The notes below the pieces were generated by a model. That model was given only the letters and a program-made list of their open reading frames with translations. It was not told the DNA's origin and searched no databases. Of a stretch of 64,000 nucleotides of DNA, positions 30,573 through 59,500 are shown in pieces. Both the position numbers and the translations under genes were made by a program. The number at the start of each line of letters is the position of its first letter. The first letter of the stretch is position 1. The DNA is taken from the IMG/VR virus record IMGVR_UViG_2162886007_000107, positions 172,431-236,430 of that record. One strand, 5' to 3'.

Positions 30573-32210
30573 GTGATGTCTGATAACACTTTGCAATTTA
30601 TCACTCTCGATGAAACCAAACGTCTGGCCGAAGATGTGGTCAATGACGTCGAGCGTGCCGTTGTCGCGACCATGGGTCCGAACGGTCGCTTGTCCGTAAT
30701 TACTGTGGGCACTACACCTAAAGTAACCAAAGACGGTGTAACCGTAGCAAAAGGTCTGAAGTTCAACGATCCACGCAAGGAACTGATCAACAAGATCATT
30801 ACCGAACCGGCGATCAAAACCGACGAAGAATGTGGTGATGGCACCACCACTACCATCATGTTGATGGCACAGTTCTTCCGTGTGTATCGGGCCTTCCCAA
30901 GCTACCGTCAGCACGCGTTCATCGATGAAGTTACCAAAGCCTGGATCGAAGAACTGCGTCGCCTGAGCATCCAGCTGGAAGTGGATGATCCACGTCTGAT
31001 GCAAATGGCTCTGACCTCTTCGAACAACGATGCGGAAATGAGTCGTATCGTAGTAGATCTGTACCGTGGCAGTAAGGAACACTTCCCATCGATCGAACTG
31101 GTTTACGGCGTGGAAGATACCGACCGTGTGATTCACACCGACGGTCTGCGCATGAACATGGAACTGAGCAATCCTCAGTATGCAGGTAACACTGCCGGCA
31201 CCCTGACTCTGGATAATTACATCCCAGTTCTGGTAGATGGTTTCATCAAACCAGAAAACGTTCAGGAGCTGATTAAGTTCTGTGGTGAGATGACCAATCT
31301 GCATGGTGACTCTCCAGTTACTGTTGTGATCATTGCTCGTGCGCTGGAAACCCAGATCGATGGTGCCATCCTGAAACTGAATGCTCAGTTGAGACAGGCT
31401 GGCAAGAAGATCAGTTTCGCTGGTGTACGTACCAACCTGGGTGGTTCTCTGGGTAGCAACATCATGCAGGACATGGCGTGCATGCTGAACTCCAGCATGG
31501 TCAGTGATCTGGATCAAGCTTGCAGTGTTACGTGGGAAGTCAACAATGACCAGTTGACCATCACCAACAACAAAGCAATCCTGATCCCAACTGAGAAAGC
31601 TGCCACTCGTATCGAAGAACGCGTGGAAGAAATCCGCAAGGTCCTCGAAAACTACGATGCTCGTACTCGTTGGAGTCGTCGTGCTCGTTTCGACGAAGAT
31701 CGTCTGCGTAACCTGACTGGTGAAGTTGTCAACCTGTGGGTTGGTGGTGAAACTCAGTCGGAAGTCAAAGAACGTCATGCACGTTTTGAAGACGTTATCA
31801 AAGCGGTCAAGAGCGGTCTGGTTAACGGCATCCTTCCAGGTTGCGGTATCAGCCTGATCGAGAGCCTGGAAGTAGCAGGGGCCAAGTTCCTGAAAGAAGA
31901 AATGTCTGAAGAAGACCGTAGCTTCAAAACCGAAATCATCGGTGCACTGGTAGAAGTTTCTCGTCACCAGTACAAGTACCTGATGGAAAAGGTTTCCGAT
32001 GTTTACATGCAACGGAACGAAGAAGGTCGTCTGATGGTAACCAACCTGGCCACTGGCGAAAATGGTTCTCCAGAATCGTTGGGTGTGTTCGACACTGCTT
32101 ATGCGTCGATCACTGCGCTGAAGGGCGGTTCTCAAACTGCCAAGATCGTAGCGACCCTCGACTCGGTAATCATCAGTGACAAACTGACAACTGTGGCCGT
32201 ACAAGGCTAA
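30573..32210 (+). CDS. phage GroEL-like chaperonin (EL gp146 / OBP gp246 type)
   Basis: TMGPNG, TKDGVTVAK, EECGDGTTT, VGGETQSEVKER..RFED, GILPGCG, DTAYASITALKG. Confidence 0.95.
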   Translation: MMSDNTLQFITLDETKRLAEDVVNDVERAVVATMGPNGRLSVITVGTTPKVTKDGVTVAKGLKFNDPRKELINKIITEPAIKTDEECGDGTTTTIMLMAQFFRVYRAFPSYRQHAFIDEVTKAWIEELRRLSIQLEVDDPRLMQMALTSSNNDAEMSRIVVDLYRGSKEHFPSIELVYGVEDTDRVIHTDGLRMNMELSNPQYAGNTAGTLTLDNYIPVLVDGFIKPENVQELIKFCGEMTNLHGDSPVTVVIIARALETQIDGAILKLNAQLRQAGKKISFAGVRTNLGGSLGSNIMQDMACMLNSSMVSDLDQACSVTWEVNNDQLTITNNKAILIPTEKAATRIEERVEEIRKVLENYDARTRWSRRARFDEDRLRNLTGEVVNLWVGGETQSEVKERHARFEDVIKAVKSGLVNGILPGCGISLIESLEVAGAKFLKEEMSEEDRSFKTEIIGALVEVSRHQYKYLMEKVSDVYMQRNEEGRLMVTNLATGENGSPESLGVFDTAYASITALKGGSQTAKIVATLDSVIISDKLTTVAVQG

Positions 32211-38663: not shown

Positions 38664-39245
38664 ATGTTGACTAAAGCCTTTGAGTTGAAAAAAGAATTCC
38701 CGTTTCCCTTCCGTGGCGGCAAGCTGCTGTTGGACAAACGCACGTTGGTGCCTACCAACCTTAACGTTGCTGTAGCCATCAACAATGATCTGGTTTACAC
38801 TTTGAAACCAGACTTGAAAGGCGAGATCACTCTGTACGGTATCACCTACGGTAACCAAGGGTTGCCTATGGTTGTCATGAGTGACGGTCATCACACCCGT
38901 TACTACTGGTTCAGTCGCAAACGCCATTACACCTACCTGGTCGAAAGCGGTAGCAATGATCTGGACGAAGCCTGGCTGAACCTGTTCAAATCCATCGTCA
39001 CCAACACTCGGTCGAAAGTGATCGACATGTACGAGATCATGCGGACATTCATTCGTGAATACTTCTGGACTCTCGGTGACAAGGAACTGCACCTTACATT
39101 GTCGACGAAACACAACGATGAATTGTTGTACATCGAAGTGGCCAAAGAACACGGCATGCGTCGGGCGATGTTCATTACTGTCAATGGCAAGAACCGGTTG
39201 GTAGATTTCAGCAAGCATCCATTGCTGGAAGTATTGGAGGCCTAA
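38664..39245 (+). CDS. hypothetical protein
   Basis: AAGGAG RBS; 193 aa. Confidence 0.75.
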   Translation: MLTKAFELKKEFPFPFRGGKLLLDKRTLVPTNLNVAVAINNDLVYTLKPDLKGEITLYGITYGNQGLPMVVMSDGHHTRYYWFSRKRHYTYLVESGSNDLDEAWLNLFKSIVTNTRSKVIDMYEIMRTFIREYFWTLGDKELHLTLSTKHNDELLYIEVAKEHGMRRAMFITVNGKNRLVDFSKHPLLEVLEA

Positions 39246-39299
39246 GGGCTTTGACAGGGGTGGATTGTTCCGCCCCTTTTCTTATTTGAGGGATTAAAC

Positions 39300-40634
39300 G
39301 TGTCTAAGAAACAAACTCCGTTGCAGGTTCCATACAGCGTGGCTAAAGCCTTGTTAGCAGTTCACCTCGCAGGAAAAGGGGTGGATGTACACAGTAAAGA
39401 TTTCGATAAAGAATACGGTCCGTCTATCATGAAGCTTTACGGTACGGATGAGCCGCCGGTCAACATGGATCACCTGGTCCGTCCTGATCTGAATGACGAA
39501 CAGTTCGACGAACTCATCCGCCAAAGTCGTAGCCTGCGCATGTGGGACAAGCTAAGGGAGATTAACGATAAGTCTCCTACCGGCACGGCGTACATGATGT
39601 ATACCGATGCAAACGGTCACCCTACCTGTGCTGGCAGGAATTGCGGCGAGTGCGCTTCTTGCTACGACAAGGAGCTTTCTTTTAATCCGGTAATCGTTGG
39701 GGGCAACATGGGACCTGTTGATTACTTGAATGGTCTGCACATGAGCGGTTCCGGCAAGACTGGGTTGCTTTCAGCATTCCACAGTGCCAAGCACATTCCG
39801 GACAATATCCCCTTGACCAGTCTGTGCAGAACCGGTGGCTTCCGTCGTGGTGAGTTTGCGACGATAAGCTCCCTTGGTTTCGGTCGTTTTGACAAGCCGA
39901 CTACCAGCCATATCGCCAATCTGGTTCGTTCCATGATTGACAAGAAACCTTTGTGGCACATTAGCCTGGAGAACACTCCTCGCGGGTTTGCCTATGACTT
40001 TGAAATGGATGTCCATACCCCATCACATCCGATAACGAAGATGGCAATGTGGGGTAACGGTCCTCTTCGGGCTTATCGCTCGCGTCCTGGTAATCCTCAT
40101 CGTCCTACTCTTTATCCGGAGCAGATATTCAATCTGAAGGAACTGGAAAGCAAATCCTACATCTCAGTTACCTATTACGGTGACATCGAAGTAGGTGGTA
40201 AAAAGGTTCCAGGCGTTAAAGGTGTTCCTGCAACACCACGCAATGGGTATCACGAATACTTTTACGCAGATAGCTTGTCCGACAGGACTCTTTATCGTAA
40301 GCATTATTACGCGCGTAATGGTGTTTCTGGTATGCATGGTCTGGACGCCGATTATTACGGCGAAAGCATGTTGCTCCGCCCTATCGGTCCACGTGACAGC
40401 CTGGGGTACCCGGTGCGTGAAGACTGGGCTGAAGAAGCCATCGACAAAATGATCTGGTTGCAGTTGAACAAAGATCACATCCCGCTGACTTTTGACCCGA
40501 CGTATGGTCATGTCCGAAGCATCACCAACATCGGTAAGCCTAAAGCTACCTGGCAAACCCGTCATATCAAAGAAACAGCGCGCGAGCGTCTGCGTCAAGC
40601 CACCTCGCCAGGGAAGGATAAGCGTGGGTATTGA
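39300..40634 (+). CDS. mosaic hypothetical protein with Cys cluster and degenerate DnaB-like segment
   Basis: CAGRNCGECASC; GGFRRGEF...KKPLWHISLEN. Confidence 0.7.
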   Translation: MSKKQTPLQVPYSVAKALLAVHLAGKGVDVHSKDFDKEYGPSIMKLYGTDEPPVNMDHLVRPDLNDEQFDELIRQSRSLRMWDKLREINDKSPTGTAYMMYTDANGHPTCAGRNCGECASCYDKELSFNPVIVGGNMGPVDYLNGLHMSGSGKTGLLSAFHSAKHIPDNIPLTSLCRTGGFRRGEFATISSLGFGRFDKPTTSHIANLVRSMIDKKPLWHISLENTPRGFAYDFEMDVHTPSHPITKMAMWGNGPLRAYRSRPGNPHRPTLYPEQIFNLKELESKSYISVTYYGDIEVGGKKVPGVKGVPATPRNGYHEYFYADSLSDRTLYRKHYYARNGVSGMHGLDADYYGESMLLRPIGPRDSLGYPVREDWAEEAIDKMIWLQLNKDHIPLTFDPTYGHVRSITNIGKPKATWQTRHIKETARERLRQATSPGKDKRGY

Positions 40635-41262
40635 TTATTACGTACAAGACTTAGAGAACGGGGGGTACAAGTTGGACAGACGAATTGATGGAAATGCACA
40701 GCGTGTGTTTGATCACTCTTCGCGTTTTAGTTTTGCTGCGCGTCATGACGTGGGTTGGCCTTATCCACAGAGTCGTCTCATGCGAGACCTCAAATTCATG
40801 AAAGTCTTTGGTGGTTTCCAGAAATGTGAGACACCAATTACAGAAGGTTCTAATCCCTTCATACGCGTGGTCTACGTGCCTAAGCTTGCTCCGCTTATGG
40901 TGCTGGACAGAAAGATGTGTATCACTGTAGCCGGTCACAAGGTCTATGTTGGTTGGATTGCCCGTTTAGGCCAGAACATGTGGCGGGATATTTCCAACAG
41001 CATTAAGTCAGTGCATCACGCGATCAGAAACTTGGATAAAGATGGTTACCCACGAGATCCGGTTAATCGTAATACTGATCGTGCTGAATGGGTGGAGAAG
41101 GCCATGTACCAAATGGGGTTCTCTCGTTCCAACTACAAACCAACGTTTCAAGAACGGTTTCCATACGTCAACGTAGGAACCATCGGTCACCGGGATCATC
41201 CAAAAGCGTTGACCCCAAACACTATTAAAGCAACTATTAAGGAATTTCTGCATGACTTCTAA
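40624..41262 (+). CDS. hypothetical protein ending in an EF-Tu G1-like motif
   Basis: AAGGA RBS with GTG 40624; [23 protein letters not shown]. Confidence 0.7.
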   Translation: [212 protein letters not shown]

Positions 41263-42052
41263 AACTGATAATCTGTTGGGTCTGTTCACTATCTGCACTG
41301 GTTATGTGGCCCTGACCGGTAACTACCACAAAGACGACAACAAGACCGTCCAGGAATGGATCAACGGCTATCGCCATGCTCACGAAATCACTGCTGAAGA
41401 AAAAGCAGAGATGGTTGAACTCGACCAGGTCATCACCATCGATTTCTGGCTGGATCGTTTCGGTGAACGCTACACCTGCTTCGGTGGTTCGGTAGAAGCT
41501 GCTGCGGCTCGTGCTTTCGAACGTGCCAAAGTGCTGACCGAAAAAGCCGACTTCACCTTCGAGCTGGGCAAGATTAACCTGACCGAAGCAGTCGAACTGT
41601 TGGTCAAGATCTGTGCCAAGTCGGTGGATCTGGAATACAACCAGTACAAATCCACCAACTGGGGCTACCACGGCACGCAGGGCGAAGACCGTACTGCTGC
41701 CGATTACGTGGCGTTCCTGAAAGACACCAATCCGGAAGATTTCGTACCGGATATGGATGGTGACGTCGTCTTCACTCAGGAAGTTTGTGAGAAGATGATC
41801 GAGACTGGTGAAGTCTTCGAACTCCGCATCTATCCTCACACTACGATCGGTTCTTACTCTTACCTGCATCACGACATCGGCTTCATTGTCTATGGCGCTC
41901 TGGTAACGGTCAAAGACGAGAACCTTTTCAACGGTGGTGACGTCGAACAAAATCGCGCCCTCTCCCAGGCCATCCAAAACCTGGAAGTTAATCCAGCGAT
42001 CAATACAGTCGGGTTCGATAACGTTAACCTCAACGGCGGGTGGAAACCCTAA
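41252..42052 (+). CDS. hypothetical protein with internal domain duplication
   Basis: AAGGA RBS; strong codon bias; two similar halves. Confidence 0.8.
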   Translation: MTSKTDNLLGLFTICTGYVALTGNYHKDDNKTVQEWINGYRHAHEITAEEKAEMVELDQVITIDFWLDRFGERYTCFGGSVEAAAARAFERAKVLTEKADFTFELGKINLTEAVELLVKICAKSVDLEYNQYKSTNWGYHGTQGEDRTAADYVAFLKDTNPEDFVPDMDGDVVFTQEVCEKMIETGEVFELRIYPHTTIGSYSYLHHDIGFIVYGALVTVKDENLFNGGDVEQNRALSQAIQNLEVNPAINTVGFDNVNLNGGWKP

Positions 42053-42613
42053 ATGACGCTCCCCAACTTCAAGACTACAAAAGCGAAGCCGGGGCGGGCA
42101 GAGTTGTACCACATCTCGTTTAAGGATCGTTCCTTTGGCGGGATGTGGAGTCCTGATAACCCAGCAGGGTTTGATGAGTCGGAAGAAAGTTCTCCAGGGG
42201 TCGTGGGTGATCCCTCCTGGCCTTATGGGGAACCTAGCCTCCCTCGCATCAGTGTAGGTCCAACCATCGAACAATGTTTCCGTGGTGTGTTCCCCAATGT
42301 AGCGCAGTTCTTCGAGAAGAAGAATTATCCCTACATGCAGTTCAGTGTGTTCTCTCCTAAGTTTGTTGGTACTGAACGTATCATCACTCCGGAAGAACTC
42401 ACTAAGCACCGTATGGTTTGGGATGCGTGTGTCAATGATGAGCATTGCATCTTGGATGAAGTTTACATGGGCTACGTGGGCACTGTGATTGTGTATAACA
42501 CGAATAAGTCGCCTACCATGTATATCCATCCCTTCGGTGATGAAAAGCTTAAGCTGGAGAGTGTAGGGCCTGCTACCATCAAGTGGAAGTGGGAAACCAA
42601 ACTAGTTCCTTAA
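42053..42613 (+). CDS. conserved phage protein, possible ART-like fold
   Basis: LYHIS...EPSLPRISVGPTIEQC...VWDACVNDEH. Confidence 0.7.
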   Translation: MTLPNFKTTKAKPGRAELYHISFKDRSFGGMWSPDNPAGFDESEESSPGVVGDPSWPYGEPSLPRISVGPTIEQCFRGVFPNVAQFFEKKNYPYMQFSVFSPKFVGTERIITPEELTKHRMVWDACVNDEHCILDEVYMGYVGTVIVYNTNKSPTMYIHPFGDEKLKLESVGPATIKWKWETKLVP

Positions 42614-42654
42614 CTTGAAGATGAAGTTGGGTCTATATTACCAGAGTGTATGAA
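42609..42654 (+). promoter_or_regulatory. phiKZ-type early promoter
   Basis: CTTAACTTGAAGA-N11-CTATATTAC; core at 42634-42641. Confidence 0.8.
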
Positions 42655-42687
42655 GAAACAACTTTTATTTTCCAAGGAGAAAGTGTC

Positions 42688-43260
42688 ATGGGTCTGGGTC
42701 CTGGCGTCGAACCTGATGCTAAAGAAGCATCTGAAAGTAATAACAAAAACATGTATCGCGATAAAGATGATCGCGATGGTGTTTCCAGCATCCTGTTGTC
42801 TGTTGGTCCGGAAGACGAAACCCAGATCATCAAGCGTGGTGCTCTGGCTGAAAAGCAATCCGGCCTGATTGAAATGGATAACCGCTACCTCGCTCAAGGC
42901 GTAGCAAAGCTGGCTGACTTCGGTAATGTCGGTCGCGATGTGGCAAACATGCTGCGTGTCGTAGCCGGTCGTCTAATTCTGGAAAGTGTCCCACGTGATT
43001 TGTGGCGTGAGTACATTCCAGAAGGTAGTGAAGCCAAGGCCTGGTCGCTGATCGAATACCGTTCTTTCGGCACTATCGCTCGCTACACCATTTTCAAACA
43101 AGGACCTGGCAACGATCGTCGTGATGAAGATTCGGTAATGCAGATCCTCATGATCAGTAGCTCTGGTCAATTGCTGGAACGTCAACACCTCACTGGTGGC
43201 AAGGCTGAAGAACATCGCAACTATCTTGACGCCTGGATGCACCAGCAGCGTAGTTGCTAA
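42688..43260 (+). CDS. hypothetical protein
   Basis: AAGGAG RBS before ATG 42688. Confidence 0.75.
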   Translation: MGLGPGVEPDAKEASESNNKNMYRDKDDRDGVSSILLSVGPEDETQIIKRGALAEKQSGLIEMDNRYLAQGVAKLADFGNVGRDVANMLRVVAGRLILESVPRDLWREYIPEGSEAKAWSLIEYRSFGTIARYTIFKQGPGNDRRDEDSVMQILMISSSGQLLERQHLTGGKAEEHRNYLDAWMHQQRSC

Positions 43261-43283: not shown

Positions 43284-43309
43284 CTAAGGAGGAAATGATT
43301 TCTCCTTAG
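43284..43309 (+). promoter_or_regulatory. hairpin sequestering a perfect SD sequence
   Basis: CTAAGGAG...CTCCTTAG. Confidence 0.4.
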
Positions 43310-48198: not shown

Positions 48199-49536
48199 TT
48201 AGACTTCTTCGATGATTGGTCTCCAACCAGCGTAGGTTTGAGTGCCGTTTAAAGCAACATACCAGCCAGCCAAAAGTTGACGGTTACCTGCGTTGTCAGC
48301 ATCGTTGTAGCCACGAACCAAATGAGCACTGTTACCAGTGATAATTTCCTGACACCAGGTCATTACACCAGCGCCTGCTGAGGTAGCTTTACTGGTAGAA
48401 AGCCCCAGTTCAGCATCCGTGTAAGCAGCCCAACGTGGATAAGCTTGCACCTCTGGCTGATTCAACGATACACCGCCGTATACGGGGTATATGAGGTCGT
48501 TAAACGAACCACCTGTGGCAATGGTGCCATAACCAGCAGGCTCGCTAGCAGCGCCTGTAGGAAGCCTCAGGGTATGTGCTTTACCATTGATCTGGAACTG
48601 TGTCGTCCCTTTGGTAATACCCAAATTATTCATTGCTTCCCATGTCATGCCATGACGCAGAGCTTTCTTCGGCATGTACACAGTCTTGCCTTTATAACGA
48701 TACTTCAACCAGGTGGTGTTAGCATTCGTTACAGAACCAATGGAACCCATACCAACCAAGGACGTCAGTGCAGCAACAGTAATGAAGTCTGCTTCAGCTA
48801 CTTCCCCATAGAACAAATCTTCAGGAGGAAGTTCACCAATGAATTCCAACACAGGACGGAAGCCATAAACATCCAACGTACCTTGTCCGTTACCTTCACT
48901 AGCATTAGCGTCATTGATAATGGTGTGCCGGGCAATTGGATTAAGACTTGTGCCAGCAGAGTAATCCCAGCCACGAGCAGACAAAGCAGTAGTAATGCTG
49001 GTATGTTGGTTTTTACATACCGAGATCACACCTCTTTGTCCAATCAAGTTGGGCGCTGTTAGCAAACCTAGATCTCCTGCGGTGTAATACGACCACACAT
49101 CAGCAGAAGGACGATCGGGAGCAGAAAAAATTGGCCACAGATATTGATCCCACTCACCGCCACCGTTGTTGTTCAGGATGGAAGAGAAAGGGTCAATAGA
49201 CATACCAGACATCAGACGGACCTTGTAACCTAATCCGCCGATAAGAACTTGCTTACCTGTCAGCAAAGAAGCTGCCTTTAAAGCAGCGACTGTTGTGCCA
49301 TAACGCAATGGTTTACGTGCAATGTAAAACGTCTTGCCTGCATCGATGTATTTCAACCAACCAGCTTTATCGTTGATCGGTGTCCCAGAGGTCAAGTTTA
49401 ACAAACTAGCCAATGCAGGACCATCAATCAGATCATCAGAACTCACCCATCCTTGGAATGGTTTACCTGCCACTACGGCAGGAGGGACAAACGGGAGCAC
49501 TCCGGTACTCCCAACAGAAATCAATTGTTCTATCAT
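48199..49536 (-). CDS. virion structural/putative receptor-binding protein, two GWRP domains
   Basis: MIEQL start; WLKY...GKT...P...; GFRPVLE and GWRPIIE. Confidence 0.75.
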   Translation of the reverse strand: MIEQLISVGSTGVLPFVPPAVVAGKPFQGWVSSDDLIDGPALASLLNLTSGTPINDKAGWLKYIDAGKTFYIARKPLRYGTTVAALKAASLLTGKQVLIGGLGYKVRLMSGMSIDPFSSILNNNGGGEWDQYLWPIFSAPDRPSADVWSYYTAGDLGLLTAPNLIGQRGVISVCKNQHTSITTALSARGWDYSAGTSLNPIARHTIINDANASEGNGQGTLDVYGFRPVLEFIGELPPEDLFYGEVAEADFITVAALTSLVGMGSIGSVTNANTTWLKYRYKGKTVYMPKKALRHGMTWEAMNNLGITKGTTQFQINGKAHTLRLPTGAASEPAGYGTIATGGSFNDLIYPVYGGVSLNQPEVQAYPRWAAYTDAELGLSTSKATSAGAGVMTWCQEIITGNSAHLVRGYNDADNAGNRQLLAGWYVALNGTQTYAGWRPIIEEV

Positions 49537-49546
49537 GAAATGGCAC

Positions 49547-50008
49547 CTATGCCGCCATAGCAACAGGCTTTGGCAAAGTTGGATTCTTAACGATACGGTA
49601 CACGTTAACACCGGCCATGATTACTTTCTTCTTCCATGGGGTTACTTCTAGCACATCCATTGACTCTTTCAAGATAGCGTCAATTTCTTTGCGTGTAACC
49701 GGTACTCTGGTTTCAACTCCATTTACCAACTCAATGATGTAGTAAGTAGTACAGAGCTTGTCATGCAAAGTGGTGCATTGAGTGTACTCGCCAATCGGAG
49801 GAAGCAACCACCACAGCCAACGTGGGATAGTAGCGCCATCCGTTTGAAAGCCTGTCTCAACAGTGACGTAGCGTTTGGAGTTCTCTACGCCAATGTAATA
49901 ATTAAACCCAGGAACAGTGTCCCAAAGATCCTTCTTATTAATCGCGCTCGCAAGTTTGTTGTAACGCAACTGCTCTTCAGCGCTAAACCGTGTGAATGCG
50001 CTCATCAT
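49547..50008 (-). CDS. DUF1353-like protein
   Basis: VTVETGFQTDGATIPRWLW...LHDKLC...RKEIDAIL. Confidence 0.75.
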   Translation of the reverse strand: MMSAFTRFSAEEQLRYNKLASAINKKDLWDTVPGFNYYIGVENSKRYVTVETGFQTDGATIPRWLWWLLPPIGEYTQCTTLHDKLCTTYYIIELVNGVETRVPVTRKEIDAILKESMDVLEVTPWKKKVIMAGVNVYRIVKNPTLPKPVAMAA

Positions 50009-51398: not shown

Positions 51399-52304
51399 TT
51401 ACAGAACTAGTTCAAAGAGTGGACGCCAGCCGTGTTGAGGGTGTACTGCGGCTGTAGTCAGGCTGACGTTAAGCAAATCGGGGTTTGTCCCGCTACCACG
51501 GTTAATGCAAGTACTGGTTTGCAAGTCTGTGGAGAAGGTAATCCATCCGGCGTTAGCAATGTCATCCATTTGCCGGATACCCAATGTATCTGGATATGCG
51601 CGTGCTTGGAAAACATAAGGAAGAATCAGATCGTATTCGCCACCAACCTGATCAGCTGCCGCACCACTGGTACTGGACATTACTGCACGAGACGTAGGTA
51701 CTCGCATGATGAAAGAATGGTCACCCTTCGTTACTCCTTTGGCTTGAGGGATAGTACCAAAGGTAGTTTTAGCGTAGGGAGCCCAATCCGCACTTGGGAA
51801 GTTACCGTAGATCACACCGGCACGATACAACAGCTCCCAGGTCAGGTTGGTATAGATAGCCTGGCTTGCGATAAAGAGGATCTTCCCTTTATACACAAAC
51901 TTAAACCAACCTAGGTTAACGTCGGTGTTCTCGGTAGCAGAGCTAGGAATAGTTCCGACAAAGTTTTTACACTCTTGGGTCGTGAACAAATCAGACATTG
52001 CAAGTTTGCCGAAATAACCGAAGTTCCAATCACCACGATTAAGTACCTGAGGTCCCGGACCGGTGTATGGCATGTAAGCCAATGCCTTGTTTGGTGTCAA
52101 AGCTACGTCGGTTCCTTTACGAGAAGCTACGCGATAGTAGTACAGCTGATTACGTACCGCGGTATCGTCTGTGTAGGTCAGAGTGCCGCCGGGAACGACT
52201 ACCAATGGAGCTGGTAACGCGCCATCAGCAATCGGCGAAGCAGACCGATAGATCGTGTAATCATCAGCCGCATTTGAATCGGTCCAATCAATTTTGACGG
52301 GCAT
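51399..52304 (-). CDS. virion protein: FN3-like N-terminus plus GWRP domain
   Basis: IDWTD...YTIYRS...YYYRV; GPGP..L..GD..FGYFG; GWRPLFEL. Confidence 0.75.
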   Translation of the reverse strand: MPVKIDWTDSNAADDYTIYRSASPIADGALPAPLVVVPGGTLTYTDDTAVRNQLYYYRVASRKGTDVALTPNKALAYMPYTGPGPQVLNRGDWNFGYFGKLAMSDLFTTQECKNFVGTIPSSATENTDVNLGWFKFVYKGKILFIASQAIYTNLTWELLYRAGVIYGNFPSADWAPYAKTTFGTIPQAKGVTKGDHSFIMRVPTSRAVMSSTSGAAADQVGGEYDLILPYVFQARAYPDTLGIRQMDDIANAGWITFSTDLQTSTCINRGSGTNPDLLNVSLTTAAVHPQHGWRPLFELVL

Positions 52305-52315
52305 TTAACCCTCCG

Positions 52316-53269
52316 TTAAGCAGGAATGTATTCAAGAACAGGCACCCAGCTAACCCAAGCTCCAGAAGCCGCACCAGTAATGGCCCGGGGGAACACATCA
52401 GACCAGTTGGCGTTACTAACCGACCAGTTGTTAGTAGTGTTGAAATGCTGGGTAGCCATTAATGGATAAGGAACACCAGAAGCATCGCCCCATTTAAAAG
52501 GCTGTAGTAAAGGGACGTCAGCAGCAAGAATAGACGTGGTCATAGAGCACATCAACTCACACCACTCGCTTCCTTTAAACGTGCTACGATCAGGAACGTT
52601 TTGATCCGTTGCCAAAGTACTGTTTTTAGGAATACGTACCAAGAAACTATCGCTACCGACGGTGACGACCTTTTTCTGGTTAACTGGGGCCGAGATAACA
52701 GGACTGGCTCCAACCGTTGTCAGGTTAAATGGAGCAGCCCCTGGGCCATCAACACCGTAAACCAATCCCAAGTTATAAATCTGAGACCAGGTGGAAGTGC
52801 CTGCTACGGAGAACGTGTTGTTGGGGAAAAACAAGATTTTGCCATTAAAGACAAACTTGTACCAACCGGTCATTGTGCCATCGGCCGGAGCAGATCCCAG
52901 CTGATTACTGGCATTTACTGCTGTACGCAATCCAGAGATAGTAAACAGCTGGGCAGCGGGCACAAAGCCCATATACCCAGCATTCCAGTTACCGCGCAAT
53001 ACGGTATTGCCGCCTGGCCCTGTCTTGGAGAAGTTTCCGTACAACATGCACTGACTGTATTGAGTATTGGACCCGGCCTTAACGGCCTCAACCATGTAAT
53101 ACCGAGTGCTTCGATCTGGGACCGTAGTGTCGGTATACGTGACGGCTGTTGGATCCAACACCGCTTTGGTGCCTGGCAATGTTGCTGGAGTGAACGCCGT
53201 ATCGGACCAGTAGATCGTCAACGTGTCAGGAAGGCTGGACATTGCAGGCCAATCAATTTTGATAGACAT
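52316..53269 (-). CDS. virion protein: FN3-like N-terminus plus GWRP domain
   Basis: Paralog of 51399; WYKFVFNGK; WVPVLEY. Confidence 0.75.
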   Translation of the reverse strand: MSIKIDWPAMSSLPDTLTIYWSDTAFTPATLPGTKAVLDPTAVTYTDTTVPDRSTRYYMVEAVKAGSNTQYSQCMLYGNFSKTGPGGNTVLRGNWNAGYMGFVPAAQLFTISGLRTAVNASNQLGSAPADGTMTGWYKFVFNGKILFFPNNTFSVAGTSTWSQIYNLGLVYGVDGPGAAPFNLTTVGASPVISAPVNQKKVVTVGSDSFLVRIPKNSTLATDQNVPDRSTFKGSEWCELMCSMTTSILAADVPLLQPFKWGDASGVPYPLMATQHFNTTNNWSVSNANWSDVFPRAITGAASGAWVSWVPVLEYIPA

Positions 53270-53278
53270 GGAATCTCC

Positions 53279-54229
53279 TTAGCTTTCGATCAATTCCAGT
53301 ACTGGCCACCAGCCGTAGAGTACACCGTTCCAGGTGGCCGCAGCTCGGTTGGCAGGACCGGTACGGTTAGCAGTACCGTTACCACGAACCAAGTTGTTGG
53401 CGGAGTTACCAGCGGCAATACGTTCTTGAACGACACTGCCAGAAGTCACGCCAGTGGAGGACATGAACAGGTCGGCTACAGTAGCTTGTTGAACGTTAGC
53501 CATTCGTTGCAGATCTGGGCAATACATCGACAATGGATAGACAATGTCATTCCATTCGTTAGGCCACAATTCAGTAGGCTCGGTAACGCTTGGTGTAACA
53601 GGATAACGTGCCAAAGTATCGTCAAAGCCAGTCATGCAGCGCACACGGTAGAGTTCACCGCCAATGGTTACCTTAGCACTTTGGTTAACGTTAGCCCCGG
53701 CGTTAGTTGGGCCAGGACCATCAACACCGTAAACCAGCCCGAGGTCATAAAGAGTTTTCCAACCAATGTTACCGCAGATAGGACCATTAGGAACGTACAA
53801 CACTTTCCCGTTACGAATCCATTTATGCCACAAAGGACCTGGTTGGTTAACTACACCAATGGTCAGACCTACAGCAGTACGCAGATCAGTGGTATTGATA
53901 AACTCGCCAGAGGTCAGTGTACCAAAGTAACCATAATTGAAATCACCAATCTGCAAACTAACAGGCCCAGCACCTTTACGAGGGACAGCCCGAATAGGGA
54001 TGTTGTCGGTGCTTTGTTTATCGCCGTTGCTATTGATGGTGGTTTCAAACACGTAGTAGTACAACGTGTCGCGAACAGTGGTAGTGTCGGTGTAAGTGGT
54101 TTCGTTATTGGTCAATGTCGCAATGGGGTTAGCGAGATTAGAACGATCCAATTTACTGGTACCACGATAGATCTTGGTGGTGAATGTACCTGGAGCATTC
54201 AGGTTAGTCCACTGAAGAATCGTATCCAT
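53279..54229 (-). CDS. virion protein: FN3-like N-terminus plus GWRP domain
   Basis: Paralog of 51399; WHKWIRNGK; GWWPVLEL. Confidence 0.75.
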   Translation of the reverse strand: MDTILQWTNLNAPGTFTTKIYRGTSKLDRSNLANPIATLTNNETTYTDTTTVRDTLYYYVFETTINSNGDKQSTDNIPIRAVPRKGAGPVSLQIGDFNYGYFGTLTSGEFINTTDLRTAVGLTIGVVNQPGPLWHKWIRNGKVLYVPNGPICGNIGWKTLYDLGLVYGVDGPGPTNAGANVNQSAKVTIGGELYRVRCMTGFDDTLARYPVTPSVTEPTELWPNEWNDIVYPLSMYCPDLQRMANVQQATVADLFMSSTGVTSGSVVQERIAAGNSANNLVRGNGTANRTGPANRAAATWNGVLYGWWPVLELIES

Positions 54230-54241
54230 TATTTACTTCCT

Positions 54242-55246
54242 TTAAGCGACATACGAGCCGGTGATAGTAAAAGCCTTAAGGCCCGGAGACTCCGCGGTAC
54301 CTCTAGGTGCCGATGGTTTAAGAGCCTGATTAACAAAACTGTAAGTCGGGTTAGGTAGCTGATAAGGCCAAGTTTTTTGTCTTGGAGCTGCCGGTTTTTG
54401 AGCCGGGCTACCTGTCCACTGCCGAACATCATTAATGACTGGAGCAAAAGGACCTGGGGTTCTGTACAACAGGGTATATGGATCTTTAGCCTCTGTATCA
54501 GGAATCAGCTCCAGCACTGGACGCCAGTAATGGCCACTAATGCCTGATACTCGATCTGTTTTAAGGATCGTTCTGTAAGCACCCATGATCACACCACTAG
54601 CGCCATCACCACGTACGTTACACTGGTTAACGTTGTTGGACATGGTTTCCATGGTAACGGAGTCAGGGCTAGACTGACTCCACCCTAAGGCGTTATAGGA
54701 CATTGTAGCAAACTTTGGGGTAATGTTGCCATCAAGCGAAATACTGCAACGACCCAGCAATTGACTCCATTCACCCGTGTAGTCCCCGACGTTTGCAGGG
54801 GCAACAGGATCAGCAGCGTAACCTCTAACTAGTCGAGGTTTTAATACCCAGAGTTTTTCACCCTCATATTTAGGCATCTGAATGAACTGATGCTTAGGAG
54901 TGGCCAGAGGGTATTTGCCGTTATCGCGCGTCCCATACACCATACCAGCAGCATACAGGTCAGCCCAGGACACGTTACTGCGGAAAGGTCGTTTAGCAAT
55001 GAAGATGACCTTGCCGTTCCAGATGAATTTAAGCCAGTGGTTAGCACCAGGGACCAAGTCTGGGTGGTCGGTACCTTGATACATACCACCCGCACCAGCC
55101 ACCTGGGAAATGCCAAACAGTTGAGTGTCCGTCACTTCACCAAAGTAACCCAGGTTCTGATCACCGCTAAGCAGTGCTTTTGGTCCAGGACCTGAGTTAC
55201 CGATGTAAATAGCTTTACTACCTGTAGTAAGTAGTTGCTCAATCAT
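54242..55246 (-). CDS. virion protein, GWRP domain
   Basis: MIEQL start; GPGPKALLSGD..GYFG; YWRPVLEL. Confidence 0.75.
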   Translation of the reverse strand: MIEQLLTTGSKAIYIGNSGPGPKALLSGDQNLGYFGEVTDTQLFGISQVAGAGGMYQGTDHPDLVPGANHWLKFIWNGKVIFIAKRPFRSNVSWADLYAAGMVYGTRDNGKYPLATPKHQFIQMPKYEGEKLWVLKPRLVRGYAADPVAPANVGDYTGEWSQLLGRCSISLDGNITPKFATMSYNALGWSQSSPDSVTMETMSNNVNQCNVRGDGASGVIMGAYRTILKTDRVSGISGHYWRPVLELIPDTEAKDPYTLLYRTPGPFAPVINDVRQWTGSPAQKPAAPRQKTWPYQLPNPTYSFVNQALKPSAPRGTAESPGLKAFTITGSYVA

Positions 55247-55259
55247 GTTGTTCCCTCCA

Positions 55260-56516
55260 TTAAGGGACTAATTCGAGTACCGGTCTCCAGCCATAACCAG
55301 CATGAGTGGTGTTAGCGATCTGGTACCATACGCCAAGGAATCCAGGATAACCGCGTGTCAACCATCCACCATTAGCACTGTTGGCTTCTTGGCACAAGGT
55401 CAGCTCGCCGTTGCCTGTACTACCAGTCCAACCAACATCAGTATTGGTAAGAGAGTCCCAACGATCAGCAGCTTGTCCCGAATAGTTGACAGTAACGCGG
55501 GAGAAGTAACTGTTATATTCACCACCAGCCGTAGCGCCTGGGTTAGAGGTCGCGCCTGTCATTAAACGAACTTTGTAGTTAAGCCCACCAATGTTAACAA
55601 CCTTCGTACCGTTAACAGCGCCAACGGCATTCAGTTGCTCATATGTAATCGCACCGAAGAAAGGAGTCTTGGCAATGTAGAACGTTTTGCCGTTGTCAAC
55701 AAACTTCAGCCAACCACCGTCCGGTTGGATAGATACTTTACCGGTGTTAGTAACACCAAGAAGGTTGTACAACGCCAGACCACCAATTAAGTTAGCTGCC
55801 GTTACTACACCTCTATAAGGAGATGGAGGAATGGTAGATTTCTTAACAAGTACTGGACGCCAACCGTAATACGTCTGCGGGTTATTAGGCGGCATGTTCC
55901 AGATACCCATGATAGGGTGGTTACCACTGGAATTCTGCCAGTCATTGCCTCGCAAACAATAACCGTTAGCTAAAGTCTCGGCGCAAATAGTGAAAACACC
56001 ATCGCCAAGGTCGGCTCCTCCTGGAGCACCAAGTCCTAACATTGTTCTTGTGTAGTTACCCCAAATGGGGGCTCCACTAATGCCACCACGGTCAGAGTTA
56101 TCATAGATCGCATACATGTAGCGATTCCACTCACCCCCAGCGTTGGACGGCACTGCATTTGCAGAAGAAGAAATTGCACCTGTCATCATTCGACAGATGT
56201 AAACCTCCCCTCTGATAGTAATCTCTTTGGCACCATTGTTGGTGGCCTGCATGATTTGTTCGTAAGTAGTCGCGTAACGAATCGGCTTCTTAGCGATAAG
56301 CAGTTCTAGTCCGCTGTCTTCAATGAAATGAAGCCAACCACCATCCCTATTCATTGTTGCGCCGGGAGTTAACCCGATAAGTGTAGCGAGGGCATCACCA
56401 TAAATAAAGTCAGCTGACTTTGTTATTCCTTTAAACGGAGTCCCTTCCGGAAAAGGTATGTCGGAATTGTCATCAGCTCCCTGTTTATATCCGGTCCCAA
56501 TCAGAGCTTCGATCAT
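55260..56516 (-). CDS. virion protein, two GWRP domains (paralog of 48199)
   Basis: MIEAL start; GWRPVLV and GWRPVLEL. Confidence 0.75.
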   Translation of the reverse strand: MIEALIGTGYKQGADDNSDIPFPEGTPFKGITKSADFIYGDALATLIGLTPGATMNRDGGWLHFIEDSGLELLIAKKPIRYATTYEQIMQATNNGAKEITIRGEVYICRMMTGAISSSANAVPSNAGGEWNRYMYAIYDNSDRGGISGAPIWGNYTRTMLGLGAPGGADLGDGVFTICAETLANGYCLRGNDWQNSSGNHPIMGIWNMPPNNPQTYYGWRPVLVKKSTIPPSPYRGVVTAANLIGGLALYNLLGVTNTGKVSIQPDGGWLKFVDNGKTFYIAKTPFFGAITYEQLNAVGAVNGTKVVNIGGLNYKVRLMTGATSNPGATAGGEYNSYFSRVTVNYSGQAADRWDSLTNTDVGWTGSTGNGELTLCQEANSANGGWLTRGYPGFLGVWYQIANTTHAGYGWRPVLELVP

Positions 56517-56586: not shown

Positions 56587-59500
56587 TTACGGAACTACAG
56601 CGCCCGCTGCACCGACCCACTCAACACCATCCCAGGTGAAGGTAATGAAGGTACGGCTACCAGTCAACGATGGAGGAGCACCAGTGTTCCATACCAGAGC
56701 CGTAGCACCAGTAGGAGCAAAGGTGATCGCACCAGTTGCACCATTGATCTTGAACACCAGTACCTTGGCACGAACAGGACCTTTCGGACCATCGCTCAGG
56801 GTAATGGTTTTAGCAGTGGCTGCAGTGTTGGTGATAACAATGAATTGATCCACCAGCGCATCGACAGTACCAGTCGCAGACAGAGTCTTGATTGGCAGGT
56901 CGTACTGGTTGAACTCGATCCATTGGCTGTTCTTGTACACGTAGGTCTTGCCGTCGTTACCGCCAACAGGACCAGAGATGCCAGACGAAGGTGCGGTGTA
57001 AACCACCCAGGTCTTGTCACCTTTACGAAGGTACAGATTGCTGTCTGTCGGAACATCAGCAAAGCCAGGTACAAACGCATTGATCTGCGCCTGGATTTTA
57101 CCGAACGCCTGGATCACCGTGTCAGCAGCAGCGATCGCGCTGTTGGTTGCCAAGCTCAAACCAGTCAGAGGCGTCGAACGAACACGAGCCTGAGTGAAGT
57201 AGAGGTTAGTAGTACCCTCCACAACAGCATCAGTGGTGCCAGGCGAAGCCACCAGCTGGATGTACGCGGAACCAGACCAGCGATACTGAACGTTGGTGTT
57301 GAGGGCGATGTAGATTTTGCCAGTTTCACCAGTAGCCGGGAAGGCTGCAAGGTTGGCAAACTCCAGCACGTCATCAACGTAGCTTGGCAATTGGCTTGCA
57401 GGAACGAAACCGTTAACCAGCGTAGCAACCGACACACCCAGTTCTGCGACAGGAACACCACCCAAGCTCATGAGAGTCGGAGGCTGGTATTTCAACCAGT
57501 CACCGTTATCAGCACCTTCGGTACGAGTACGCATGTACGGGAAACCGTCATCAGGCACGTCGTCCTGAATTGCAGCGGGCACCCAGTTACCGCCCAGACG
57601 CACAACTTTGCCCAGAGACAGCAGTGGCGAGTTAACGTCACCAGCAACCAGACGACCCCACAGTACCCAGCCATCAGTAGCCGTCTTATAAAAGACGTTG
57701 AAGGTAGCCGAGATAGCCCAGTCGCCAACACGACCAGAGAAGGTATCGGAAGGAGCATCCATGCCAGCAGGCAGAGTCAACCAACGGCTACCCTGATCAC
57801 CTTTAACACCAGGCTTACCAGGCAGGCCTTCACCAGGAGGACCTTCTTTACCCTCAGGACCACGGAACTCACCAACGTCTTTCCAGTCGGTAATGCTCGG
57901 AGCCCAAATAACCAGGTGACCGTTTTCCAACATGTAAGCGTCGGTCTGGGTACCGGTAGGGTGAGCAGCACGCAATGCGGCCATGTCTGCGAAGGTGTCT
58001 TTGATGGCTACGGTCGCGCCAGGATCGCCCTGGATACCTTTACCGCCATCAGGACCTACAAAGTCAAACGGACCGTTGTACTGACCATCGACAACAACAT
58101 AAACCTGCTTGTCGTCCAGAGTCTGCCAGCCGTCGCCTTCTTCAGCAAAACCATCGCCTTCACCGATTGGAGGAAGTGCCGCCAGGTTTTCAACAACGCC
58201 ACGCAGTTTGAGCGGAGTACCGTTCTTACCGATGTCACCTTGTTGACCCTGGAACTTACCCGCATTCTGCCAAACGTTTTCGACGTTCACCCAGACAAAC
58301 TTGTCGAGATCGACGTAAGCTTTGCCTTTGGTGATATCGGTGGCTGGAGGAATGGTCTGATCTTCTTCGGTCAGGATCTTGATGATGTCGAGGGATTTAC
58401 CATCTTTACCATCAGTACCTTTGAAGCTACCCATCTTCAGCCAGGAGCTGCCGATGTAAGCGTACAGAGCGTTTTCATCCTGTACCGAGTACACCCACTG
58501 ATCTTGCGGGCTAGCCGGCAAGTCAGCAAAGGTCGCCACAACACCACGCAGATAAATGGACTGGCCGTCAGCACCTTTAAGCGAAGTATTGAAGTCAGCT
58601 TCAGATCCAGAGTTACCCAGATCCAACCAGTTTTGGTAAGCGGACTTACCATCAGCGCCTTTGAAAGGACCGAGGTCTTTCCAGCCACCACCCGAAGTGC
58701 TCCAGACCCACAGACGATGAGTGGAGTTAACCACGTATGCGTCTTGATCCTGAGGAGAAGGAATGGCTTGAAGTGCTGCGTCATCGGCTACGGAGCCTTT
58801 GATTTGCAGGTTCTTACCGTCTTCACCATCAGCGCCTTTCTGAGCAATCCAGTAATCTGCTTCAGTCTTGCCATTGTTTTCTGGCAGGGTCAGCCAGTAG
58901 GCAACAGCGTTAAGACCAGGATCACCTTGGAGACCTGGTTCACCTTTGAACTCACCCAGGCGAACCCAAGCGGCGTTGATGTAACCGTAAATCGAGTTAT
59001 CTGCACGTACAGCCCAGATATCCTGTTCTTCAGGTTCAGCAGGCAGATCACCGACGGTGTTAACTGCGCCCTTCAGGATCAGGCTTACACCAGGAGTACC
59101 GTCGATACCTTGGAAGCGACCCAGGTTTACCCATGCATCGACAATCCACATCCAGACGGTGCTGGTGTCTTGGACGGCCCAAGCATCCTGATCGGCAGGA
59201 GAGGCAGGTAATGCAGACTGAGTAGCCACGGCGCCTTTGATAATGACGTTACGACCGTCAGTACCGTCTTCACCTGGTTCCCCGTCTTTACCGTTGAATT
59301 TGCCCAGGTCTTTCCAGACAGCATCTACTTCAACGTATACCCACAGGTGGGACGTATCACGCAGAACGTAAGCGGCCTGGTCATCCTTAGGCTTGGTGTC
59401 GAGTTCGGCAGCATTAGCAACCGTACCAAGGATCTGGAGGTTTTTACCAGGGATGCCCTGATCGCCTTTGGTGGACTCTTGCCATTCTTCAATGGTCTTG

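Follow-up and report, generated by a model that had tools for sequence, protein, structure and literature searches.

Mimicry of host proteins through short linear motifs is established for eukaryotic viruses, and phages encode mimic proteins such as Ocr; short-motif mimicry is, to our knowledge, hardly documented for phages. Few bacterial proteins are as abundant or as conserved as EF-Tu, and it recurs in phage-host conflict, as with Lit, type IV Thoeris, Avs7 and Qbeta replicase. Caulobacter phage Colossus carries gp247, a 98-residue fragment of EF-Ts (PMC3556154). Our literature searches returned no paper that mentions the string VNVGTIGH in a phage context and nothing relevant on EF-Tu mimics or fragments in phages; the only trace was in maps of phiPLPE-group genomes, which mark small phage proteins with an EF-Tu start as 'Tu' (PMC3391216). 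Here we describe a segment resembling the start of EF-Tu, with VNVGTIGH as its exact core, in a 212-residue protein of an uncultured ~236-kb relative of Pseudomonas phage EL. The stretch of DNA analysed (the window) comprises 64,000 nucleotides (nt), positions 172,431 to 236,430 of the IMG/VR virus record IMGVR_UViG_2162886007_000107, and the gene that encodes the protein is referred to as the motif gene. From sequence comparisons, we put at about an even chance that the segment is a selected, portable EF-Tu-mimic peptide in a giant-phage protein of otherwise unassigned fold, and that it engages a partner of the EF-Tu N-terminus.

Translation of window positions 41146-41214 gives exactly the 23-residue peptide reported in a first-pass annotation of this DNA, which had described it as a mimic of the EF-Tu G1 region at the C-terminus of a phage protein. 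The exact VNVGTIGH core and its likeness to G1 were borne out. The location needs a small correction, in that the segment is near the C-terminal end but 15 residues follow residue 197. The part of EF-Tu covered is residues 5-24, which comprise the N-terminal arm, strand beta-1 and the first half of the P-loop, and 13 of the 20 aligned positions are identical to the EF-Tu sequences fetched (F5, P10, V12-H19, D21, H22 and K24). The His-x-Asp signature of elongation factors is present as H189-R-D191, corresponding to H19-V-D21 of EF-Tu. The D21 of this signature is exposed on EF-Tu and, when the factor is on the ribosome, enters a pocket of the 23S rRNA (PMC9825190). When the single window protein was compared by phmmer with all PDB sequences, nearly all of the 60 matches listed were EF-Tu chains, at E-values of only 0.003-0.1. 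The profile of its family (A3, described below) was compared by hhalign with an alignment of 13 bacterial EF-Tu sequences and matched EF-Tu residues 6-33 over 28 columns with a probability of 95.7% and P = 9.4e-9. The nearest neighbours in the ESM Atlas were EF-Tu N-terminal fragments, at a score of 0.68, which is below the level that the tool rates as reliable. Collectively, these comparisons indicate that the EF-Tu likeness is real and beyond chance.

An exhaustive profile search of 1.84 billion representatives recovered 17 clusters related to the window protein (the A3 family), 16 of them at E <= 1e-10 and the best at E = 6.5e-30. The members are 28-41% identical to the window protein and lie on contigs of up to 233-242 kb, corresponding to phages of ~235-240 kb. 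Conservation within the family is highest at residues 141-190, where the commonest residue of a column has a share of 0.56-0.71, compared with 0.18-0.54 elsewhere. The consensus of this block is DPVPRN..RE.WVEKAMW.MGMSRSNY.PTF.ERFP.VNVGT[IV]GH.D.G, with the motif closing it, and the window protein fits this consensus. The core of the family, which was recovered by whole-protein searching independently of the motif, is VNVGT[IV]GH, with one VSVGTIGH and one MNVGTVGH, and the aspartate equivalent to D21 of EF-Tu is kept in 11 of the 12 motif-bearing rows. The first-pass annotation had named lack of conservation in orthologues, together with a deletion that has no phenotype, as what would speak against its proposal; the motif is kept in 11 of the 17 A3 members. 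The six members without it form two groups on a maximum-likelihood tree, and two losses from a motif-bearing ancestor would be the simplest history.

At the nucleotide level, a search of 185,579 species genomes for the 24-nt core GTCAACGTAGGAACCATCGGTCAC found an identical stretch of tuf in 17 of them. The resemblance to tuf DNA noted in the first-pass annotation is therefore present in the core, but the number of matches is that expected by chance (15-30 tuf genes, given 12,288 synonymous spellings), and the codons flanking the core are only 36-46% identical to tuf. The 17 genes are scattered over unrelated phyla, including candidate-phyla bacteria, Actinomycetota and Planctomycetota. An orthologue that is 76% identical to the window protein (P0002) differs synonymously in most of the 12 motif codons, and its peptide is the same except for one change of N to S. 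Third codon positions vary freely between orthologues, and the spellings are free across all the families examined. The codons thus turn over while the peptide is kept, which indicates that the likeness is maintained by selection on the protein. The idea that a fragment of host tuf was recently captured was rejected, since there is no donor at the DNA level, the flanks are unrelated and the motif is old in a family diverged to 28-41% identity. The alignments thus indicate that the motif is old and not a recent acquisition from tuf.

The segment lacks most of what defines a translational GTPase. The Walker A (G1) pattern GxxxxGK[ST] is replaced in the window by G-H-R-D-H-P-K-A, and the earlier remark that the P-loop glycine is substituted and normal GTP binding unlikely was correct, Gly23 being Pro and Thr25 being Ala. 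With only 15 residues after the motif, there are no G2 (RGITI), G3 (DxPGH), G4 (NKxD) or G5 boxes. The beta-barrel domains II and III of EF-Tu are likewise absent, as there is no Pfam match and the protein ends at residue 212. The Pfam family GTP_EFTU (PF00009) did not match the window protein and matched one of the 17 A3 members at E = 0.055. Within A3, some members end at GHIDHGR, right after GH.D.G, and others have GHQDQE. On these sequence features the window protein is classed neither as a member of the EF-Tu family nor as a GTPase. Scans of the window protein and all 17 family members against Pfam and PHROG (the latter at a cut-off of E <= 0.01) found no consistent family, and a match to Formyl_trans_C_2 at E = 0.017, seen in one family member only, was rejected as chance.

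The first-pass annotation had proposed a survey of phage proteins that contain the motif without a G domain. A degenerate-codon scan of 2.9 million viral contigs for exact VNVGTIGH found 85 viral loci. EF-Tu homology continues downstream in 32 of these, representing true or broken tuf genes, and is absent from 47, a judgement that requires at least 300 nt of downstream sequence; the remaining six could not be judged. When the motif was masked, 49 orphan loci resolved into 24 clusters that share nothing else. As a control, we used the equally conserved G3 box of EF-Tu, DCPGHADY, which occurred 65 times and never outside EF-Tu. The P-loop of EF-G, AHIDAGKTT, occurred 21 times and never outside EF-G. 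Because both control motifs stay inside their factors, the orphan loci are not explained by general debris of translation-factor genes. These counts indicate that one piece of EF-Tu of ~12-20 residues, unlike the control pieces, has been repeatedly installed in unrelated phage proteins, which is a previously unreported regularity.

Across the 24 clusters the module may be N-terminal, internal or C-terminal, and it lies within 30 residues of the C-terminus in eight of them. Several of the clusters with a C-terminal module come from contigs of 230-277 kb, and the N-terminal modules belong to small proteins of temperate-phage-sized contigs. Some phage modules carry the whole EF-Tu N-terminus. The phages concerned range from small temperate phages of Pasteurellaceae through ~107-161-kb Vibrio phages to ~240-kb soil phages. 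Three carriers are encoded by complete genomes of cultured phages, namely ORF27 of Aaphi23 (59 residues; L105:2998-3177), located between NinB and NinG, VPDG_00052 of Vibrio phage henriette 12B8 (59 residues) and P0089 of Vibrio phage 150E35-1 (239 residues; L107:3013-3732). Proteins with an EF-Tu start are also held by PHROGs 27465 and 12626, whose labels give no function. The window contains one motif-bearing open reading frame (ORF) in its 64 kb of the 236-kb genome, and each fetched locus likewise contains one.

The positions not fixed by the search show which parts of the module are kept. D21 is present in 18 of the 24 clusters, position 22 is His, Tyr or Trp in 20, and G23 is present in 15. 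K24 is found in ten, with Arg in six more, and Ser or Thr at position 25 in nine. What is kept is thus the EF-Tu-specific strand, which is normally buried, together with the signature residues H19 and D21, and G23, K24 and T25 are dispensable. Since the Walker residues are dispensable across the clusters, nucleotide binding is not a conserved property of the module, and the segment in the window probably does not bind nucleotide.

The small carriers show several further features. The nin recombination region of lambdoid-type phages encodes a small EF-Tu-start protein between NinB and NinG/Q (L044:3053-3634 on the minus strand, L093, L029:1204-1419 and 1424-1720, and the Aaphi23 locus L105:2998-3177). 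The module is once fused to, and once directly upstream of, a YbcO-type nuclease (PF07102 / PHROG 131); a search of 5,426 E. coli genomes for a prophage counterpart of the fusion gave no match. The string (E/A)RGITI, which in translational GTPases forms the switch-I/G2 box, is present in P0089 of 150E35-1 (L107:3013-3732) and in L101:2444-2905, and in L101 it stands just before VNVGTIGH, which is not the natural order. This region of EF-Tu is where Lit cuts. P0018 (a predicted protein of 92 residues, from the representative library) consists of two tandem copies of the EF-Tu N-terminus, possibly an assembly artefact.

A second giant-phage family, A4, is otherwise unrelated to A3 and shares its C-terminal end. 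A4 has nine members on contigs of up to ~230 kb, including L046:4308-4955, L055:1518-2060 and L081:2696-3190, all on the minus strand. When the two families were compared by hhalign, only the last ~40 residues aligned (probability 95.7%), so that the motif and the C-terminal helix together make up a ~40-residue C-terminal module common to both. The A4 profile also matches EF-Tu, with P = 2e-7. About 70-100 residues before their C-terminal VNVGTIGH-like.DY motif, the A4 proteins carry the string PNERILYYTG. Both motifs and the short C-terminal helix are invariant in A4, and the stretch between the motifs is variable and is deleted in one member. The upstream string, which came to light through the EF-G control, is a look-alike of helix 1 of EF-G (ERILFYTG / ERILYYTGRT), the part that follows the P-loop there, and a ten-residue string is identical to one EF-G. 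Its order and spacing relative to VNVGTIGH vary among giant-phage proteins. In the A3 members P0006, P0007 and L103:3033-4112 (minus strand), ERMLFYTG(K/N)SH or GRILYYTGKDN comes after VNVGTIGH.D, and in L104:3-377 (minus strand) ERVLRYTG comes six residues before VNVGTIGH. The EF-G-like motif is absent from the window protein, which contains both the EF-Tu-like motif and the helix. A viral ORF of 82 residues at L164 starts with the EF-G helix-1 string, as MERILYYTGE, and is possibly the EF-G counterpart of the small EF-Tu-start proteins. The form V.VGTIGH.DY, found in A4 and in several orphans, resembles both the G1 box (VGTIGHVDH) and the G3 box (DCPGHADY) of EF-Tu; the G1 and G3 boxes are neighbouring strands in the G domain.

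How might such a peptide act? A mimic at the peptide level would bring its carrier protein into contact with a partner of the EF-Tu N-terminus that is universal among bacteria. This partner would most likely read the segment as an extended strand, because the kept residues include ones that are buried in folded EF-Tu and because phages of very different hosts show the same constraints. One option is that the segment complements a strand, or the fold, of EF-Tu's own G domain as that domain folds. Another is that the partner is a chaperone or an enzyme that handles the unfolded or nascent EF-Tu N-terminus. In either case, the phage protein would be tethered to the translation factor or would compete with it. 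Any single partner is much less likely than the overall proposal. A wider proposal can also be made, which we regard as possible but tentative, that phages dock proteins onto host elongation factors, or onto the handlers of their N-termini, through the EF-Tu strand-loop module, which in some giant phages is joined to a copy of EF-G helix 1; they may do so by complementing the fold of the nascent G domain or by capturing a dedicated chaperone, an enzyme or an immune sensor.

Several observations weigh against the mimic and its proposed mode of action. The losses in two A3 clades and the decay of the motif in a paralogue upstream of the motif gene show that it is not indispensable. Outside A3 and A4 the exact core was required by the search, so that decayed copies are invisible there and the conservation of the core is partly a matter of ascertainment. 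Many N-terminal modules of temperate phages keep an intact Walker A motif and helix 1, and their role may differ, for example in binding phosphate or nucleic acid. The match of A4 to EF-G residues 26-47 is short and only suggestive (P = 3.5e-4, probability 37.5%). The AlphaFold2 model of A3 is poor, with a mean predicted local distance difference test (pLDDT) score of 63.8 and a predicted template modelling score of 0.25, too low in quality for a fold search. It leaves residues 185-193, inside the motif, unstructured (pLDDT < 50) between a short helix and the C-terminal helix. The model of the second giant-phage family (A5) has a mean pLDDT of 38.8 and is unusable. With both predictions poor, a 'disordered tail' would be weak evidence. 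Strand complementation with a protein as stable and abundant as EF-Tu would also be mechanistically demanding, and we know of no phage precedent for it with such a protein.

The other explanations account for parts of these data. The tail may be a decoy or pseudosubstrate that imitates the EF-Tu P-loop and so diverts or blocks an EF-Tu-directed enzyme, either an ADP-ribosyltransferase acting on Asp21 or a defence effector. Outside the core no residue is kept better than Asp21, which is present in 18 of 24 clusters and in 11 of 12 family rows; in EF-Tu it is a proven, surface-exposed target of the toxin TreTu (PMC9825190). EF-Tu is moreover a recurrent target or co-factor of phage defence, as with Lit, type IV Thoeris (10.1101/2024.10.24.620036) and Avs7 (PMC13581612). 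However, TreTu recognises folded, GTP-bound EF-Tu, and an AlphaFold2 model docks it on helix D, which is missing from the peptide (PMC9825190). Type IV Thoeris and Avs7 do not involve the copied part of EF-Tu (10.1101/2024.10.24.620036; PMC13581612), and type IV Thoeris cuts EF-Tu after R45 and R59 (10.1101/2024.10.24.620036). Known defence proteases cut at R45, R59 or G59, all outside the copied segment, the abundance of EF-Tu makes a stoichiometric decoy implausible, and the strict keeping of the buried strand residues V12-I17 would be left unexplained. We know of no defence system that acts on the EF-Tu P-loop, and we consider a decoy unlikely. The first-pass annotation had offered a decoy or an interaction tag as the reason for keeping the fragment; a kept tag fits the evidence of selection, but the targets cited for the decoy lie off the segment. 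Lit, Doc and EftM, which it had brought into the argument, act elsewhere on EF-Tu or need its true N-terminus: Lit cleaves at G59-I60, and Doc modifies T382. Alternatively, the C-terminal module may be a signal internal to the phage, a sorting or assembly tag for virion packaging, phage-nucleus import or chaperonin handling, whose EF-Tu ancestry is incidental. That the module stands at the C-terminal end, or close to it, in several unrelated giant-phage families (within 30 residues in eight of the 24 clusters), that A3 and A4 have only this module in common, and that the motif gene lies in a block running from a phage GroEL to a homologue of a structural protein of phage phiR1-37 would all fit. 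Against this, the same core is found in small temperate Pasteurellaceae phages and in Vibrio phages, without a nucleus or chaperonin, each locus has a single motif-bearing ORF, and a private phage tag need not stay identical to EF-Tu across phages of very different hosts. We regard an internal signal as quite unlikely.

Loss of the motif in two clades, its decay in the upstream paralogue, the absence of the whole family from phage EL and the low confidence of the structure model could each be expected of a functionless remnant, left after the 5' end of a tuf-like gene had been joined to an ancestral gene or overprinted by it. A neutral relic is nevertheless quite improbable, given that the motif is kept down to 28-41% identity while third codon positions are randomised, that it lies within the most conserved block, that the factor-like motifs of A4 are invariant although the sequence between them is variable or deleted, and that the module recurs in 24 clusters compared with none for the control motifs. 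The matching stretch is short, many nucleotide-binding folds begin with a strand-Gly-loop of this style, and the phage variant GH.DY weakly resembles the G3 box PGHADY too, so that an ordinary strand and glycine-rich loop might look like EF-Tu by chance or through structural demands without being derived from a translational GTPase. Such convergence is very unlikely in view of the profile-profile P of 9.4e-9, the additional matches at flanking F5 and P10, the whole EF-Tu N-terminus carried by other phage modules and the co-occurring EF-G helix-1 look-alike with its ten-residue identity to one EF-G. The strand-loop(-helix) may also be a minimal phosphate-binding loop that binds nucleotide, phosphate or nucleic acid, alone or as an oligomer. 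Both GHVDHGK[ST] and helix 1 are retained in many of the N-terminal modules, whose terminal tails are strongly basic, and those of temperate phages lie in the nin recombination region, one fused to and one directly upstream of a YbcO nuclease. In the window, however, Pro and Ala stand in place of the Walker Gly and Thr, A3 members end at GHIDHGR or have GHQDQE, and K24 is kept in only ten and S/T25 in only nine of the 24 clusters. For the window we consider a phosphate-binding loop very improbable, and it is more plausible for the intact N-terminal versions of temperate phages. Finally, the identity of the 24-nt core to some tuf genes might point to a DNA or RNA element, such as a recombination site, a regulatory structure or homology to host tuf, in which the peptide is incidental. 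The identical tuf genes are of chance number and taxonomically scattered, their flanks are unrelated, and codons are free between orthologues and families. An Rfam scan of the window gave no match, and no tRNA genes were found in it. A nucleic-acid element is thus extremely improbable and already contradicted by the synonymous turnover. Weighed against these alternatives, we continue to favour a selected EF-Tu-mimic peptide.

The coordinates of the motif gene, its segments and the main neighbouring features are collected in Table 1. The ORF containing the motif gene is listed as 40492-41262, and the GTG at 40624 is its likely start, because the ribosome-binding-site-like AGGGAAGGA lies 5' of it, it creates an 11-nt overlap with the stop of the preceding gene, the resulting 212-residue product is exactly the database protein P0001, and the orthologue P0002 also has 212 residues. 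Two candidate roles for the tail were dropped. One was a site for processing by a prohead protease ahead of the motif, where Phe is found three residues before the candidate Glu instead of the Ser, Ala or Gly expected for phiKZ-type proteases; in the case of a chaperonin tag like the GroES mobile loop, there is no sequence resemblance.

Table 1. Positions of the motif gene, its EF-Tu-like segment and neighbouring features in the 64,000-nt window.
Feature	Coordinates	Strand	Basis or remark
Motif gene, 212-residue protein	40624..41262	+	GTG start; end coordinate includes stop codon; ORF table
Most conserved block of A3, residues 141-181	41044..41166	+	Leads straight into the motif
EF-Tu-like segment, residues 175-197	41146..41214	+	Translation; phmmer against PDB; hhalign of family against EF-Tu
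Exact core VNVGTIGH (EF-Tu V12-H19)	41167..41190	+	
Degenerate remainder of P-loop, R-D-H-P-K	41191..41205	+	D21 and H22 kept; Gly23 to Pro; T25 position to Ala
C-terminal helix, 15 residues	41215..41259	+	AlphaFold2 helix 198-211, low-confidence model
Upstream 444-residue gene, distant tandem paralogue of the motif gene	39300..40634	+	BLASTP to P0007
Decayed motif in upstream paralogue, TFDPTYGHVRSITNIGKPK	40488..40544	+	Alignment and translation
Terminator-like hairpin followed by T-run	39256..39277	+	Just upstream of 444-residue gene; consensus scan only
Terminator-like hairpin	43284..43309	+	After fifth gene; consensus scan only
GroEL-type chaperonin gene	30573-32210	+	PHROG 5725, E = 9e-118; as EL gp146

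Five tightly packed genes (39300-43260), of which the motif gene is the second, lie between two terminator-like hairpins, which are likely the bounds of a five-gene transcription unit. Contigs of a plant-metagenome RNA library cover about 39.9-43.3 kb, with little outside and nothing at 38.6-39.9 kb, and DNA carry-over is possible; this coverage roughly matches the putative unit and is weak evidence of its transcription. The 444-residue gene in front of the motif gene was recognised as a paralogue through the family member P0007, to which its residues 179-412 align by BLASTP with E = 1e-8 and its N-terminal part with E = 5e-5. When the window was scanned with the family's hidden Markov model, only the motif gene itself was found; the paralogue went undetected and was seen only through P0007. 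In the relative L103, a single 360-residue gene replaces both.

The gene order around the motif gene is shared by the loci L001, L062 and L103, and the conserved position of the family is between homologues of the window genes 38664-39245 and 42053-42613 (PHROG 10766). The latter gene (plus strand), two places downstream of the motif gene, is 40% identical to g082 of Yersinia phage phiR1-37, annotated as a structural protein. Its homologues occur in giant phages of Erwinia, Klebsiella and Salmonella, and none was found in EL-like phages. The block syntenic with L103 runs from the GroEL-type gene to the motif gene. The version of this block in phage EL is much shorter and has no counterpart of the motif gene. 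A 1193-residue tail-fibre-like protein of the window is 53% identical to its counterpart in EL. A nucleotide search of the region against 50,697 phage records gave no match and no cultured relative, and a tblastn search of the same records with the window protein, P0007 and L046 was also without a match, so that the A3 family is missing from the cultured phages searched. Near-identical DNA is present in soil, rhizosphere and indoor metagenomes. Further downstream, two paralogous genes resembling virion structural proteins (48199-49611 and 55260-56516, both minus strand; PHROG 1062/16120) flank minus-strand ORFs of similar size at 51399-55246, next to the tail-fibre-like gene 56587-60168. Long antisense ORFs, such as one of 430 residues at 41237-42529 (minus strand), have homologues only at the mirrored orthologous locus and resemble shadow ORFs of the plus-strand genes.

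If the module has a common partner, its identification would reveal either a new phage route to tap or disable translation or a new mechanism of host surveillance that relies on the N-terminus of EF-Tu. Two PHROG families and several giant-phage families whose present label is 'unknown' would gain a function as well. If the docking proposal were true, bacterial viruses would have a new class of host mimicry, directed at the two best-conserved proteins of translation. The question can be tested directly with the cultured phages Aaphi23 and Vibrio phage henriette 12B8.

Compared with the known systems, the window protein resembles EF-Tu in 13 of 20 residues over positions 5-24, in the core, in the signature residues His19 and Asp21 and in a significant profile match. 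In contrast to EF-Tu, it has only these ~20 residues, near the C-terminus and not at the N-terminus, and it has no G2-G5 boxes, no domains II and III and no GTP_EFTU match. With the proteins of PHROGs 27465 and 12626, such as Aaphi23 ORF27 and VPDG_00052, it shares an isolated EF-Tu G1 core without a G domain. In those proteins, however, the module is N-terminal and usually has the full arm, an intact Walker A motif and helix 1, followed by a basic tail or a nuclease domain, whereas in the window protein it is C-terminal and degenerate, and the protein has no match to these PHROGs at E <= 0.01. The A4 family has the same C-terminal VNVGTIGH.D motif and short helix, but the rest of its proteins is unrelated and includes the PNERILYYTG string that the window protein lacks.

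The plant peptide elf18, sensed by the receptor EFR, is derived from the same part of EF-Tu (residues 1-18), and the phage was found in soil, rhizosphere and plant-associated samples. The activity of elf18 needs an acetylated N-terminus. The link to elf18 drawn in the first-pass annotation does not hold, as only 10 of the 18 positions are identical and the segment is not an acetylated N-terminus of a protein; there is no reason to tie a cytoplasmic phage protein to plant sensing. Like Colossus gp247, the window protein exemplifies a phage that carries only a piece of a host elongation-cycle factor; gp247, however, is a folded subdomain encoded as its own gene, whereas here a ~20-residue motif lies inside unrelated proteins of many families. 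The closest parallel in mode of action is the short-motif mimicry of other viruses, in which a virus copies a short host determinant to engage its partner, and this is how the module most plausibly works. It differs from that mimicry in that the copied segment is a normally buried strand and not a surface motif.

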